From the NCBI GenBank assembly GCA_950097015.1, contig CATNEN010000001.1, positions 17,484,001 through 17,548,000 of the forward strand: a stretch of DNA of 64,000 nucleotides. The letters are read 5' to 3'. Each line of letters starts with the position of its first letter. The first letter of the stretch is position 1. The notes beneath the pieces are model-generated. The model made no database searches, had not been told where the DNA came from, and saw only the letters and a list, made by a program, of their open reading frames with translations. The translations under genes and the position numbers were made by a program. Source of the stretch: Macrostomum hystrix. Taxonomy: Eukaryota; Animalia; Platyhelminthes. Positions 3,681 to 64,000 of the stretch are shown here, one piece after another.

Positions 3681-4186
3681 TGTAAGTAACCGTTAACGCA
3701 CATCGCGCTATTCTAGTTTATTTCCTACGCGGGGTTCAATGTATTTTCCCCCAGCTAATGAGCGTGCGAGCTCTTTCTGGCCAGAGATATCGATCGCCCT
3801 GTTCTTTAGACTGGCTAGCTTATTTAACTAGGGCCCCTGAGCCCGCTCGCCTGCCACCTGCCTGTCCTGCCTGTTCCGCCTATTTGTTCTTGTCCTGTCC
3901 TCTCGTGTCCTGCGTGTTCCGGCCTGTCTGTCCTATTCCGTTCGCGTCACTGCCTTTGTCCCGGCCACTGTTATCACTTATACTGTCAGTACCTTTCCAC
4001 TGTCGTTAGTTATTCTGCCTTGCTGCTGCCGCCTCTGGATACTCATTTGCCTATTCTCACTCATATTGTTTGTCCACATCGAGCTCCTGCACCTGTCCTT
4101 TAATTAACTTTATTGTTATTCGCGTGTCCCAGTGGTTGTCGTAATAATAAAAAAGAAGAAATTACGAGTGCTACCGCTACATTACA
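3681..4186 (+). mobile_element. Solo LTR
   Basis: TGTAA...TTACA termini, 4-bp TSD CTAC (3677-3680 and 4187-4190), internal TATTTAA and AATAAA. Confidence 0.75.
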
Positions 4187-44005: not shown

Positions 44006-44413
44006 ATGTCTGCGAGAAGGAAGACCCAAATTCCGATGGCCGAGTATTCGCGAATAATCGGCAGCGCCGTCCGCAGGGCTATTCATGATGTTATAGCCGC
44101 CATCGTAGACGGTTGCGGCGGCGTCTGCGAACTAATGTGGCTGGCCTATCAGGCGCTCCCAACGGCCGGGATCGATGAGATCATGCTGCTGTTGGCCGGT
44201 TACCATAACCGGCACGCGGCAATCCAAGCCACACCCGGCATTAACATCGTTGAGATGCAAGAAGGGGCCTATTATGTACTTCAGGGCCCGCCCACGCAGC
44301 AGCGAGTTCGGGACTTGCTGGCAGCTCAGGGCATCGAGCTACCAGAGCCCGCAGGTTGGTGGCAGCAGCTAGGCTCCGAATCAGGCTACGACAGCATGTC
44401 TGATTCCGAGTGA
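44006..44413 (+). CDS. Array copy 2: 135-aa LOTUS-like protein
   Basis: Intact ORF, same pattern as copy 1. Confidence 0.6.
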   Translation: MSARRKTQIPMAEYSRIIGSAVRRAIHDVIAAIVDGCGGVCELMWLAYQALPTAGIDEIMLLLAGYHNRHAAIQATPGINIVEMQEGAYYVLQGPPTQQRVRDLLAAQGIELPEPAGWWQQLGSESGYDSMSDSE

Positions 44414-45098: not shown

Positions 45099-45767
45099 AT
45101 GTCTGCGAGAAGGAAGACCCGGGGGGCAATGGCCTGCGCCTCCACGAGGTGCCCCCCGGAGGACGCAAGTCCTACGAAATGCAGGCCATCAAACGGGCCC
45201 TCCCAAAGCCCAGCAAAGCACAGCACAGCACAGCCCTATCTCCCTGCCCGGAGCCCGCTGCGGTCTTTGAATGCTGTGCTTCCGTGCTGGCCCTGCTTGG
45301 GAAGGCGGGCATCATCTGATGCCCGGTGCCATGGGCCCTGGCCCGCGCACGCCCGAAGAAGAAGAAGAAGAAGGAAGACCCAAATTCCGATGGCCGAGTA
45401 TTCGCGAATAATCGGCAGCGCCGTCCGCAGGGCTATTCATGATGTTATAGCCGCCATCGTAGACGGTTGCGGCGGCGTCTGCGAACTAATGTGGCTGGCC
45501 TATCAGGCGCTCCCAACGGCCGGGATCGATGAGATCATGCTGCTGTTGGCCGGTTACCATAACCGGCACGCGGCAATCCAAGCCACACCCGGCATTAACA
45601 TCGTTGAGATGCAAGAAGGGGCCTATTATGTACTTCAGGGCCCGCCCACGCAGCAGCGAGTTCGGGACTTGCTGGCAGCTCAGGGCATCGAGCTACCAGA
45701 GCCCGCAGGTTGGTGGCAGCAGCTAGGCTCCAAATCAGGCTACGACAGCATGTCTGATTCCGAGTGA
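45099..45767 (+). CDS. Array copy 3 with in-frame 261-bp retroposon insertion
   Basis: 222 aa = 135 + 87. Confidence 0.5.
   Translation: MSARRKTRGAMACASTRCPPEDASPTKCRPSNGPSQSPAKHSTAQPYLPARSPLRSLNAVLPCWPCLGRRASSDARCHGPWPAHARRRRRRRKTQIPMAEYSRIIGSAVRRAIHDVIAAIVDGCGGVCELMWLAYQALPTAGIDEIMLLLAGYHNRHAAIQATPGINIVEMQEGAYYVLQGPPTQQRVRDLLAAQGIELPEPAGWWQQLGSKSGYDSMSDSE
45121..45189 (+). ncRNA. HDV-like self-cleaving ribozyme
   Basis: P1 GGGGGGC/GCCCCCC, P2 AUGGCCUGC/GCAGGCCAU, P3 GCC/GGU, L3 UCCACGA, P1.1 CC/GG, P4 AGGAC-GCAA-GUCCU, J4/2 ACGAAAU with candidate catalytic C45175. Confidence 0.85.
45121..45368 (+). mobile_element. Ribozyme-headed short non-autonomous retroposon, copy 1
   Basis: Absent from units 1, 2 and 5; 13-bp TSD agaaggaagaccc (45108-45120, 45369-45381); (GAA)n tail. 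Confidence 0.9.
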
Positions 45768-46474
45768 GCTTCCCGAACACGGCTTCCCTAATTTTAAATC
45801 CCTACTTCAAAATCCCTAATTTCTTGCATTTCTTAATTTCTTGAAAAAAGACTTGCATTTTGTATTTTTTTGCTGTATACTGTATTGCCGATTTGGCTCT
45901 TCTTCTGCTTCTTTTCTTGCCCCCGTGTTGTCAATCTCATCCTGCTAAGCACCTCCATATTATGCACACTTTCTTCCTATTGTATATATCACAGAAACAA
46001 TTACATTTTATCTTTTCTTGCTTATCATGTTGTATATAATCATTATGTTGTCAATTATTAAATATTACTATCTATGTTGTCTTCCACACCAATCAAACAC
46101 CTCTGCGCTGTAACATATTTTAGTTTTTTATCCCTTAATGTGATTGCGTTTTTTGTTTCAAGTAAAATGTGCTTTTAGGGCTTAAGCAAATAGCTCTTTG
46201 TTAAGGAAACAACTCTTCATATTCGTTAGATTTTTTAAAGTAAAAGTTTTAGGGCTAAATTAGGATGTATTATAATTTGAATACTACCAAGCTAGAAAAT
46301 CAAATTTTCCATTTTATACTACTAATTAGTAGAGTCAGAGCAGATTATGAAATATTACCCCTGGTTGCTTTGTTTAAGGAAAAAAGATAGCATGCTTTAT
46401 TACGTGCTTTGCACAGGCCGAAATTCATAATTAATTTTCTTTTCAGCAAAACATGTCTGCGAGAAGGAAGACCC

Positions 46475-46543
46475 GGGGGGCAATGGCCTGCGCCTCCACG
46501 AGGTGCCCCCCGGAGGACGCAAGTCCTACGAAATGCAGGCCAT
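46475..46543 (+). ncRNA. HDV-like ribozyme, copy 2
   Basis: Same as 45121-45189. Confidence 0.85.
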
Positions 46544-46722
46544 CAAACGGGCCCTCCCAAAGCCCAGCAAAGCACAGCACAGCACAGCCCTATCTCCCTG
46601 CCCGGAGCCCGCTGCGGTCTTTGAATGCTGTGCTTCCGTGCTGGCCCTGCTTGGGAAGGCGGGCATCATCTGATGCCCGGTGCCATGGGCCCTGGCCCGC
46701 GCACGCCCGAAGAAGAAGAAGA
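46475..46722 (+). mobile_element. Ribozyme-headed retroposon, copy 2 (duplicated with its array unit)
   Basis: Same sequence, site and TSD as copy 1. Confidence 0.9.
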
Positions 46723-48289
46723 AGAAGGAAGACCCAAATTCCGATGGCCGAGTATTCGCGAATAATCGGCAGCGCCGTCCGCAGGGCTATTCATGATGTT
46801 ATAGCCGCCATCGTAGACGGTTGCGGCGGCGTCTGCGAACTAATGTGGCTGGCCTATCAGGCGCTCCCAACGGCCGGGATCGATGAGATCATGCTGCTGT
46901 TGGCCGGTTACCATAACCGGCACGCGGCAATCCAAGCACCCGTATATACACGTTAGGCGGTATAGAACACGGCGAAAACCGCCTAAAAGGCGGTCCATAT
47001 CATGCTATATGATATCGTAGCATGATATAGACCGCCTTTTTTAAGCGCATAAAGGCCTTTTATGGCACAAATTTGAACAGCCGTTTCTGCTAATTTTTTT
47101 AGTTCGCTAATGCAAAATATCTATTTTACTACTTTTTAGTAACAATAATTTTAGTGTCACTAGACAAATATTTGAATGGCTTAGTACAAGTGCTAACAGG
47201 TAATATTAATTTATGTAAGCCCAGGGCCTAGCTGTTTATTATTTTTTTATTTCCAAGTCATTGAAACATTAGACAGTCACAGCATTATGGTATATCTTAC
47301 ATATTAGTCCATTAGAACTCGAGAACAATAAGACTAAACTTTAAAAGTATGGCAGGAATAGGATGGCGCTCAGTTTTTAGCTAGGCCTATCGCCGCCTAT
47401 GCCCTAGTTTAATATAGAAATAATATAGTAAAGCTTAAAACCTATGCTAGCTGTATATTGAGCAGGCATAATAATTAGCTATTCTAGTATACTATTGCCT
47501 AGCTGCTAGCTGTAGAATGAGTGCCTTCTGCTTGGCACACTGACAAGATAGCTGTCCTATCATCTATAATTTTACTGTGATTTTACTGTGATATCATTTT
47601 TTGTAATTTTCTTATTTTCTTCCCATTTTTAAAAGCAAGTAGGGCGGCTAGGGCCTAAACAAATTAAAATTTTCAGATTTTTTTTGCAATTAGTTAACTA
47701 ATACGGTGTCTTCTTGAAGTATTTAAAAATATATTTCTATAATTGTTAGTGTGCTGTCCAGATAAGCAGGAAATTATTCCTACAGTAGGGGCCTACCATA
47801 GGAATAAGACAAAAAAATTTATGGCACTGTGGGGATAAGCACTGCCATAGAAAATTCTATACATAAGGGTCCCTAGTATGCTCAGCACACAATCATGGCA
47901 CACTAAGGCCCCTGGGGCACAACAACAATAACAATAGCAAAGCACACCACAGTAGAACAGAGTACAGTTCTAAAAGGTGTACACTATATTTAATCACTGT
48001 TCACATCATGACTATTTTCTTAGAAACAGTACAAAGAAACAGTTGGCAAAGAAGCATAGATGGCATACAGTTGGCCCAAAAATTGACCCCCAAATTTTTT
48101 CCTAGTGAAAACTATGCCATCTTTATTACTATGCTATGGGTCATAGTCAATCATGTACTATAAACTATAGTGATAACCAATATTCAAAATAAAATAGTAC
48201 TGTTGTCTTTTGTATATAGTATATTATTAGTAATTTTATATATTTTATCACTTACATTAGATGCATCTTTCTTATAAACCTATATCATG

Positions 48290-61990: not shown

Positions 61991-63619
61991 ACAAAGGAGT
62001 GGAGTGGTAACAAGTAAAGCCTCTGAAGCAACAATTGGCTTTAACCTACAACACAACATAGTAGTAGAATAGCTAGAACCTAATTATAAACTTAGGCCTA
62101 TAATTACAAACAATACACATATTTATGCCAGCAACTAGTTATACAATTTAGCTAGCTACAGGCCTACAGCTAGCAGCTAGGCAATAGTATACTAGAATAG
62201 CTAATTATTATGCCTGCTCAATATACAGCTAGCATAGGTTTTAAGCTTTACTATATTATTTCTATATTAAACTAGGGCATAGGCGGCGATAGGCCTAGCT
62301 AAAAACTGAGCGCCATCCTATTCCTGCCATACTTTTAAAGTTTAGTCTTACTGTTCTCGAGTTCTAATGGACTAATATGTAAGATATACCATAATGCTGT
62401 GACTGTCTAATGTTTCAATGACTTGGAAATAAAAAAATAATAAACAGCTAGGCCCTGGGCTTACATAAATTAATATTACCTGTTAGCACTTGTACTAAGC
62501 CATTCAAATATTTGTCTAGTGACACTAAAATTATTGTTACTAAAAAGTAGTAAAATAGATATTTTGCATTAGCGAACTAAAAAAATTAGCAGAAACGGCT
62601 GTTCAAATTTGTGCCATAAAAGGCCTTTATGCGCTTAAAAAAGGCGGTCTATATCATGCTACGATATCATATAGCATGATATGGACCGCCTTTTAGGCGG
62701 TTTTCGCCGTGTTCTATACCGCCTAACGTGTATATACGGGTGATCCAAGCCACACCCGGCATTAACATCGTTGAGATGCAAGAAGGGGCCTATTATGTAC
62801 TTCAGGGCCCGCCCACGCAGCAGCGAGTTCGGGACTTGCTGGCAGCTCAGGGCATCGAGCTACCAGAGCCCGCAGGTTGGTGGCAGCAGCTAGGCTCCAA
62901 ATCAGGCTACGACAGCATGTCTGATTCCGAGTGAGCTTCCCGAACACGGCTTCCCTAATTTTAAATCCCTACTTCAAAATCCCTAATTTCTTGCATTTCT
63001 TAATTTCTTGAAAAAAGACTTGCATTTTGTATTTTTTTGCTGTATACTGTATTGCCGATTTGGCTCTTCTTCTGCTTCTTTTCTTGCCCCCGTGTTGTCA
63101 ATCTCATCCTGCTAAGCACCTCCATATTATGCACACTTTCTTCCTATTGTATATATCACAGAAACAATTACATTTTATCTTTTCTTGCTTATCATGTTGT
63201 ATATAATCATTATGTTGTCAATTATTAAATATTACTATCTATGTTGTCTTCCACACCAATCAAACACCTCTGCGCTGTAACATATTTTAGTTTTTTATCC
63301 CTTAATGTGATTGCGTTTTTTTTTTCAAGTAAAATGTGCTTTTAGGGCTTAAGCAAATAGCTCTTTGTTAAGGAAACAACTCTTCGTATTCGTTAGATTT
63401 TTTAAAGTAAAAGTTTTAGGGCTAAATTAGGATGTATTATAATTTGAATACTACCAAGCTAGAAAATCAAATTTTCCATTTTATACTACTAATTAGTAGA
63501 GTCAGAGCAGATTATGAAATATTACCCCTGGTTGCTTTGTTTAAGGAAAAAAGATAGCATGCTTTATTACGTGCTTTGCACAGGCCGAAATTCATAATTA
63601 ATTTTCTTTTCAGCAAACC

Positions 63620-64000
63620 ATGTCTGCGAGAAGGAAGACCCAAATTCCGATGGCCGAGTATTCGCGAATAATCGGCAGCGCCGTCCGCAGGGCTATTCAT
63701 GATGTTATAGCCGCCATCGTAGACGGTTGCGGCGGCGTCTGCGAACTAATGTGGCTGGCCTATCAGGCGCTCCCAACGGCCGGGATCGATGAGATCATGC
63801 TGCTGTTGGCCGGTTACCATAACCGGCACGCGGCAATCCAAGCCACACCCGGCATTAACATCGTTGAGATGCAAGAAGGGGCCTATTATGTACTTCAGGG
63901 CCCGCCCACGCAGCAGCGAGTTCGGGACTTGCTGGCAGCTCAGGGCATCGAGCTACCAGAGCCCGCAGGTTGGTGGCAGCAGCTAGGCTCCAAATCAGGC
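63620..64000 (+). CDS. Array copy 5 (no insertion), runs off the window
   Basis: Same ORF as copy 2, with the KSGY variant. Confidence 0.6.
   Translation, partial: MSARRKTQIPMAEYSRIIGSAVRRAIHDVIAAIVDGCGGVCELMWLAYQALPTAGIDEIMLLLAGYHNRHAAIQATPGINIVEMQEGAYYVLQGPPTQQRVRDLLAAQGIELPEPAGWWQQLGSKSG

Follow-up and report, generated by a model that had tools for sequence, protein, structure and literature searches.

A short, internally deleted LINE derivative with a putative HDV-like ribozyme at its 5' end in Macrostomum hystrix

Within an array of repeated units in the genome of the flatworm Macrostomum hystrix, some units carry a short insert that neighbouring units lack. A preliminary description of the locus had taken this insert for a SINE-like retroposon whose first base is the cleavage site of an HDV-like ribozyme. 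The locus raises the question of what the insert is, where it comes from and how its 5' end is set. We analysed it within a window of 64,000 nucleotides (GenBank assembly GCA_950097015.1, contig CATNEN010000001.1, positions 17,484,001 to 17,548,000, forward strand). Positions given below without a locus name are those of the window.

The insert is 248 bp long (45121–45368, + strand), ends in a (GAA)n tail and is flanked by a TSD of up to 13 nt, as read from the sequence and from comparison with empty sites. The filled site consists of ...GCG AGAAGGAAGACCC, then from 45121 onwards GGGGGGCAATGG through to (GAA)6, followed by AGAAGGAAGACCC and AAATTCC. In the same array, the sites at 44008 and 63622 are empty and read GTCTGCGAGAAGGAAGACCC followed directly by AAATTCC, with AGAAGGAAGACCC present once only. 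Since the site is uninterrupted in these two neighbouring units, the insert, the TSD and the tail are as the preliminary description had given them, although its 13 bp for the TSD is a maximum, the first 5 nt being assignable equally to the GAA tail. The features of the locus are as follows.

45108–45120, + strand: left TSD copy AGAAGGAAGACCC, identical to 45369–45381 and preceded by the GCGAG target motif.
45121–45189, + strand: predicted HDV-like ribozyme, based on a descriptor match, a sub-threshold RF00094 score and compensatory changes in the related elements L055, L086 and L099; most copies start here.
45190–45242, + strand: remaining parent 5' UTR (parent nt 70–122) up to the deletion junction, from a 122-nt common prefix with the parent copy L032.
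45243–45319, + strand: end of the parent ORF, ~77 nt in length (parent nt ~4002–4079), with the stop codon TGA at 45317–19, from a suffix match to L032.
45320–45354, + strand: parent 3' UTR, retained by the window copy as well as by the other deletion form, L040.
45307–45324, + strand: hairpin GGGCAUCA..UGAUGCCC, seen in the fold.
45355–45372, + strand: (GAA)6 tail, whose last bases are also the first of the right TSD; all copies with a readable 3' end finish in (GAA)n.
45369–45381, + strand: right TSD copy AGAAGGAAGACCC, matching 45108–45120.
46475–46722, + strand: second copy of the insert, 100% identical, with the same flanks and TSD (ribozyme 46475–46543), duplicated with the 1354-bp array unit.
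44008–44034, + strand: site as it was before insertion, in an adjacent array unit; a further empty site is found at 63622.

Classical SINEs, which are transcribed by Pol III, have a head derived from tRNA, 7SL or 5S and internal A and B boxes. No tRNA-like head was found in the insert by ARAGORN, no B box matched within it, and the Rfam small-RNA models gave no match in it. The reported absence of Pol III boxes is thereby borne out.

The origin of the insert became apparent from its two ends. The first 129 nt and the last 127 nt match the genome separately, and at no fewer than eight loci (at least 8; 220 Mb, 42 contigs) the two matches lie 3.4–4.0 kb apart in the same orientation. The full-length parent copies, L031–L038, are LINEs of ~4.13 kb with a single ORF of 1305 aa starting at element nt 162. 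The ORF comprises Exo_endo_phos (APE), RVT_1 and RNase_H domains and a C-terminal Cys/His motif (CCHC; the C-C-H-C residues are invariant), and there is no 2A-like motif at its N-terminus. The frame is complete and open in three copies, and the copies are 98–100% identical. The best database relative of the ORF is a protein of Macrostomum lignano with 77% identity. A single ORF with APE, RT and RNase H is the architecture of the Ingi/L1Tc group, and the named database matches carry generic labels only. Membership of Vingi is unlikely, since a review describes Vingi-1 as an element without RNase H (PMC13708176).

Compared with the full-length copy L032, the insert joins parent nt 122 to nt ~4002 and then runs to the end of the element, with 98–100% identity. 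It retains part of the parent 5' UTR and, on its 3' side (~127 nt), the last ~77 nt of the ORF, the 3' UTR and the tail. Judged by these matches, the insert is a SIDE (short internally deleted element) of an autonomous LINE and not a free-standing SINE; the parent LINE is, on its sequence, a recently active element, and the SIDE its young, non-coding offshoot. The earlier label of a SINE-like retroposon family stands as far as the retroposon anatomy is concerned. It does not stand for an independent SINE origin, as the element is an internal deletion of a LINE with the same ribozyme. Its family is tiny. The 3' UTR together with the hairpin at 45307–45324 is a likely recognition site for the LINE reverse transcriptase.

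The array contains four SIDE copies, at 45121, at 46475 and at two positions just outside the window. Their flanks and TSDs are identical, so they represent one insertion that was amplified with the array unit. Filled and empty units are interspersed, so amplification of the filled unit came after the insertion. Independent insertions are few: the window form is found at two loci (the window and L039), and there is one other deletion form (L040), which joins about nt 1–76 to the last ~70 nt of the parent. A (GAA)n tail is present at the window site, L039 and L040, and a TSD follows CGAG where it is readable. It could be argued that the element was never mobilised as a short RNA, and that a full-length LINE was inserted and later deleted internally at the DNA level. 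The four local copies do amount to a single insertion event, and the microhomology at the deletion junction is just 1–2 nt. Against this, L039 lies on another contig in unrelated flanks, which do not suggest one segmental duplication with the window, and yet both of its breakpoints fall within 2 nt of those of the window copy; a further short form, L040, likewise has a TSD and a tail of its own. Deletion at the DNA level would need two independent events with matching breakpoints and is thus distinctly improbable. The occurrence of L039 in unrelated flanks and of L040 with its own TSD indicates instead that short forms have been mobilised, yet only a few times.

We then considered the 5' end. 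The first 69 nt of the insert can be folded into the nested double pseudoknot typical of HDV, with P1 crossing P2, P3/L3 within P1 and P4 within P2 (by our own descriptor). P1 has 7 bp (45121–27/45151–57) and P2 has 9 bp (45129–37/45181–89). P3 is formed by GCC/GGU (45138–40/45148–50), with the L3 loop UCCACGA (45141–47), and P1.1 by CC/GG (45142–43/45158–59). P4 is the hairpin GGAC-GCAA-GUCC (45161–64/45169–72) with a GCAA loop. J4/2 is UACGAAAU (45173–80), in which the putative catalytic cytosine C45175 is followed by G-A-A. Every pairing named in the preliminary description is therefore present. Its caveat that J4/2 is slightly long also stands, the distance from the C to P2 being 6 nt here vs 4 in HDV. 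An alternative register with an 8-bp P1 that had been considered would need the flanking C45120; the base at this position differs among copies, so that register is not conserved.

The specificity of the match depends on the stringency of the descriptor. A loose version was non-specific, with 31 matches vs ~19 in shuffles, and the descriptor was tightened for this reason. The strict version demanded G1, a 7-bp P1, a 3-bp P3, a 7–8-nt L3, a P1.1 of two Watson–Crick pairs, C-N-A-A in J4/2 and a P2 of at least 6 bp. With this descriptor, which like all those used here was written or tuned after the sequence had been seen, the window matches only at 45121 and at the array duplicate 46475, against 0.125 matches per shuffled window. 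A search with HDV-like descriptors and covariance models had been proposed earlier; the descriptor recovered the register exactly, and the Rfam side gave only a sub-threshold match to RF00094. At gathering thresholds no Rfam model matched the insert. In a permissive scan, the HDV_ribozyme model RF00094 scored 24.9 bits vs a gathering threshold of 50 (E = 0.13 on 401 nt), and its alignment places the model G1 on 45121, in the same register as the descriptor. The minimum free energy fold, restricted to nested pairs, was not better than shuffles (z = −1.35). An unremarkable z-score is expected, because nested folding does not show the pseudoknot, and it lends the fold no support. The non-specific loose descriptor and this z-score are what one would also see if the HDV fold were a chance match in GC-rich sequence. 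Chance fits poorly with the two strict matches where 0.125 would be expected, and with the position of the fold, which begins at base 1 of the element.

In HDV-like ribozymes the cut falls just before the nucleotide that opens P1, which is usually G1 and often part of a G.U pair. If the fold cuts RNA, independent copies should begin at the equivalent of G45121, where the preliminary description had placed the 5' junction of the insert, and most of the copies read do. The window copy, L031–L035, L038, L040 and L042–L044 start exactly at GGGGGGCAAUGG directly after the TSD. L041 also starts at GGGGGGCAAUGG, and its target site is ambiguous. The exceptions are L036 and L039, which are without the first 5–8 nt, and L037, which has one extra G. 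Where both ends are available, the TSDs are 9–13 bp long, differ between loci and abut G1 directly. A genome-wide look for copies had been suggested earlier, and its outcome is different TSDs with mostly identical 5' ends; on the whole, the 5' ends of these copies are not ragged. A CGAG motif just before the left TSD was seen at nearly all insertions of the LINE family and its sister family (flanks of L031–L044 and L055; 45104–45109 in the window). This suggests either a preference for the nick site or base pairing between the GAA tail and the target. The preferred CGAG target matches the GAA/GAG of the tail. L035 and L038, from different contigs, resemble each other in their 5' flanks, though these have diverged, and share the TSD-side sequence gaggcaattct. 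Either the two insertions hit copies of another repeat, or the likeness reflects an old segmental duplication.

Uniform 5' ends would fit a precise transcription start equally well. The conserved 5' end could then be a promoter within the element, or a 5' UTR element of another kind, from which transcripts start precisely at G1 with no self-cleavage, the HDV likeness being structural only. The sub-threshold Rfam score agrees with this explanation. A single stretch of 77 nt serves L1Tc both as promoter and as ribozyme (PMC3383444), and the two roles may coexist.

Within the main family, changes are mostly compatible with the fold. In L035 a P1 pair changes from G-C to G.U, and in L044 a P2 pair changes from C-G to U.G and a P3 pair from G.U to A-U; one P2 pair is broken in L041. 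The sister LINE family, L055, has 66% protein identity. Its P1 is GGAGAGC/GCUCUCU, with two double changes from G-C to A-U and a G1.U pair. Compared with the main family, P3 changes from G.U to G-C and P1.1 from C-G to U-A, and the P4 hairpin is different, with L3 and CGAAAU unchanged. Two distant LINE relatives, L086 (28% protein identity) and L099 (38%), were found by a metagenome scan and protein alignment and have the same fold. In both, this fold sits directly upstream of, and overlaps, the first in-frame ATG of the LINE ORF. Their P1, P2, P3 and P4 sequences are entirely different from those of the main family, and all of them pair. The L3 loop reads UUCUCGU in L086 and UCCACGUU in L099; in each of them P2 is preceded by GAAACUAA.

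Across the four lineages to which the tally is confined, P1 shows double changes at 4 of its 7 pairs, with G1-C replaced by G1.U in L055, L086 and L099. P2 consists of wholly different sequences that still pair, the third P3 pair changes from C-G to G-C, and the P4 hairpins differ. The single-stranded core is retained, with UYCNCG in L3 in 4/4 lineages and CGAAA in J4/2 in 3/4. L099 has GGAAA, and it may be a dead ribozyme copy given the G at the position of the catalytic C. The distance from this C to P2 is 6 nt in the main family and 9 nt in L086, and 8 nt follow the G in L099. Pairs were counted from explicit parses checked against the sequences and not from MAFFT alignments, because the latter displace L086 and L099 by a single column. 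A descriptor based on the features in common found only four true sites (main family, L055, L086 and L099) in 783 kb of LINE loci and 0 in 4.7 Mb of shuffles. A covariance model of the ribozyme found 31 genome sites, about ten of them diverged. A permissive Rfam scan of L086, L099, L055 and L040 gave no HDV-type match.

Other LINE families of the same genome (L057–L073, 35–43% protein identity) yielded no convincing ribozyme with a descriptor that misses large-insert variants, and the other metagenome LINE loci that include the N-terminus gave no descriptor match. L132 was considered as a relative of the ribozyme and left uncounted, as it has a P1 mismatch and no CGAAA. In L086 (77–94) and L099 (145–150) the 3' strand of P2 contains the first in-frame ATG, so that translation would begin inside the ribozyme. 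A decayed copy of the sister family, L074 (G000:C7:13316208-13316319), has the first ~35 nt of the ribozyme (the P1 5' strand to P3) tandemly duplicated.

These comparisons bear on both alternatives. The compensatory changes keep an RNA double pseudoknot and not a DNA motif, and the letters that are conserved belong to the single-stranded active-site core of HDV (L3 UYCNCG; J4/2 C-G-A-A). A promoter or other element acting with no self-cleavage is unlikely in this light. The recurrence of the fold at the same position, with compensatory changes, in LINEs of 28–66% protein identity makes a chance match very unlikely when it is taken together with the strict and the shared-feature descriptors. 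The covariation of the four lineages supports the HDV-like fold as it was claimed earlier. The first 69 nt thus very probably form an HDV-type self-cutting RNA that would trim the transcript to its exact first base.

Taken together, we consider it probable (roughly 0.85) that the insert is a SIDE of the ~4.13-kb LINE, that the HDV-like fold sets its exact 5' end, and that it is copied in trans by the protein of the parent. Anatomy, parentage, the largely uniform 5' ends and the conserved fold are observed; self-cleavage, read-through transcription and mobilisation in trans belong to the proposal. The mechanism we propose follows the established behaviour of the ribozymes of R2, Baggins, R4, Dong and L1Tc (PMC3774820, PMC3185411). 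The element would be transcribed within a longer RNA, here that of the array gene, in which it lies in sense. The 69-nt double pseudoknot would cut this RNA immediately 5' of G1, and cleavage would give the exact 5' end of the element with no promoter of its own. The retained 3' UTR and GAA tail would be recognised by the protein of the parent, and the short RNA would be copied in trans. Target-primed reverse transcription at a nicked ...CGAG site would then lead to insertion with a 9–13-bp TSD.

The array unit is 1092 bp long when empty and 1354 bp when filled (44006–44413, 45099–45767, 46453–46956 and from 63620 in the window). It contains an ORF that is GC-rich, is about 135 aa long (MSARRKTQIPMAEYSRIIG...) and gave no match to a Pfam family. 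The SIDE lies in sense in this ORF after codon 7, between MSARRKT and QIPMAEY, and adds 261 bp (87 codons) that are in frame and open. Because of this position, transcription of the array gene could supply the putative co-transcript. Just upstream of the SIDE is a pyrimidine-rich, acceptor-like motif, ...ttttcttttcag, in which the tract and a 'cag' lie 6 nt before the ATG; these may be a splice or trans-splice acceptor. The second SIDE-bearing unit is interrupted at ~46937 by a large insertion, and the array resumes near 62742–63650. In Logan contig sets (library type unrecorded, none marked RNA) the LINE is found at ≥99% identity, and L032 is covered including its 5' UTR; neither ends nor joints of the element are seen in them.

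A wider reading joins these observations. A lineage of APE–RT–RNase H LINEs, in flatworms and in unknown eukaryotes of metagenomes, would possess a distinct sub-type of HDV-like ribozyme with an expanded, A-rich J4/2 (6–9 nt) and, in some members, a start codon that falls within P2. The in-frame SIDE in the array gene would turn its transcript into a self-cleaving mRNA, either supplying read-through transcripts or changing expression of the gene. We regard this combination as speculative and rather doubtful.

In conceptual terms, the locus is a known trick in one more element family and confirms known biology. It offers a clean natural example of a LINE and its minimal parasite, both with a putative 5' HDV-like ribozyme, in an animal group for which use of such ribozymes has been noted before mainly for R2. 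About 76–122 nt of the 5' end and 70–127 nt of the 3' end, with the GAA tail, appear to suffice in cis for mobilisation. The LINE family also shows a sharp preference for CGAG targets. For RNA-templated insertion systems, compact cassettes that combine the ribozyme and the 3' UTR of a single-ORF APE LINE are of practical interest (PMC13708176).

The fold resembles that of HDV (RF00094) in its P1/P1.1/P2/P3/P4 topology, in G1 at the cut site, here a predicted one, and in C-G-A-A in J4/2, as in genomic HDV. The core reads GCC-UCCACGA-GGU here vs GCC-UCCUCGC-UGGC in genomic HDV. The differences are that J4/2 is 2 nt longer than in HDV (5 nt longer in L086), that P4 is reduced to a minimal GNRA hairpin of 4 bp and that the score is sub-threshold. 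HDV-like ribozymes of Baggins, R4, Dong and RTE elements are among those cited in PMC3774820. In flatworms, non-LTR retrotransposons of Schistosoma mansoni carry twister-variant ribozymes (PMC8501958). The putative role, 5' processing of flatworm LINE RNA by a self-cleaving ribozyme, is the same, but the class here is HDV-like and not twister.

L1Tc and NARTc of Trypanosoma cruzi have the HDV-like ribozyme L1TcRz in their first 77 nt (PMC3185411, PMC3383444, PMC4035085). As here, the HDV-like fold at the 5' end is common to a single-ORF APE–RT–RNase H LINE and a short non-autonomous element that goes with it; the ribozyme of L1Tc cleaves at +1. Unlike L1Tc, the present elements reside in an animal, have no sequence relation to it that our searches could detect and lack a 2A motif at the N-terminus. 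The short form itself has a parallel in the R2 SIDEs of Drosophila, for which the term SIDE was defined; these are rare elements in which a 5' HDV-like ribozyme is joined to the 3' end of the parent (Eickbush & Eickbush 2012; PMC3414825). R2 has a restriction-like endonuclease specific for 28S, whereas the parent here is of the APE type with RNase H, inserts at dispersed CGAG targets, makes TSDs and ends in (GAA)n. The host here is a flatworm, and the co-transcript would be that of a host or array gene and not rRNA. Like the R2 SIDEs (PMC3414825), the insert is non-autonomous and would be propagated by the target-primed reverse transcription machinery of its parent.
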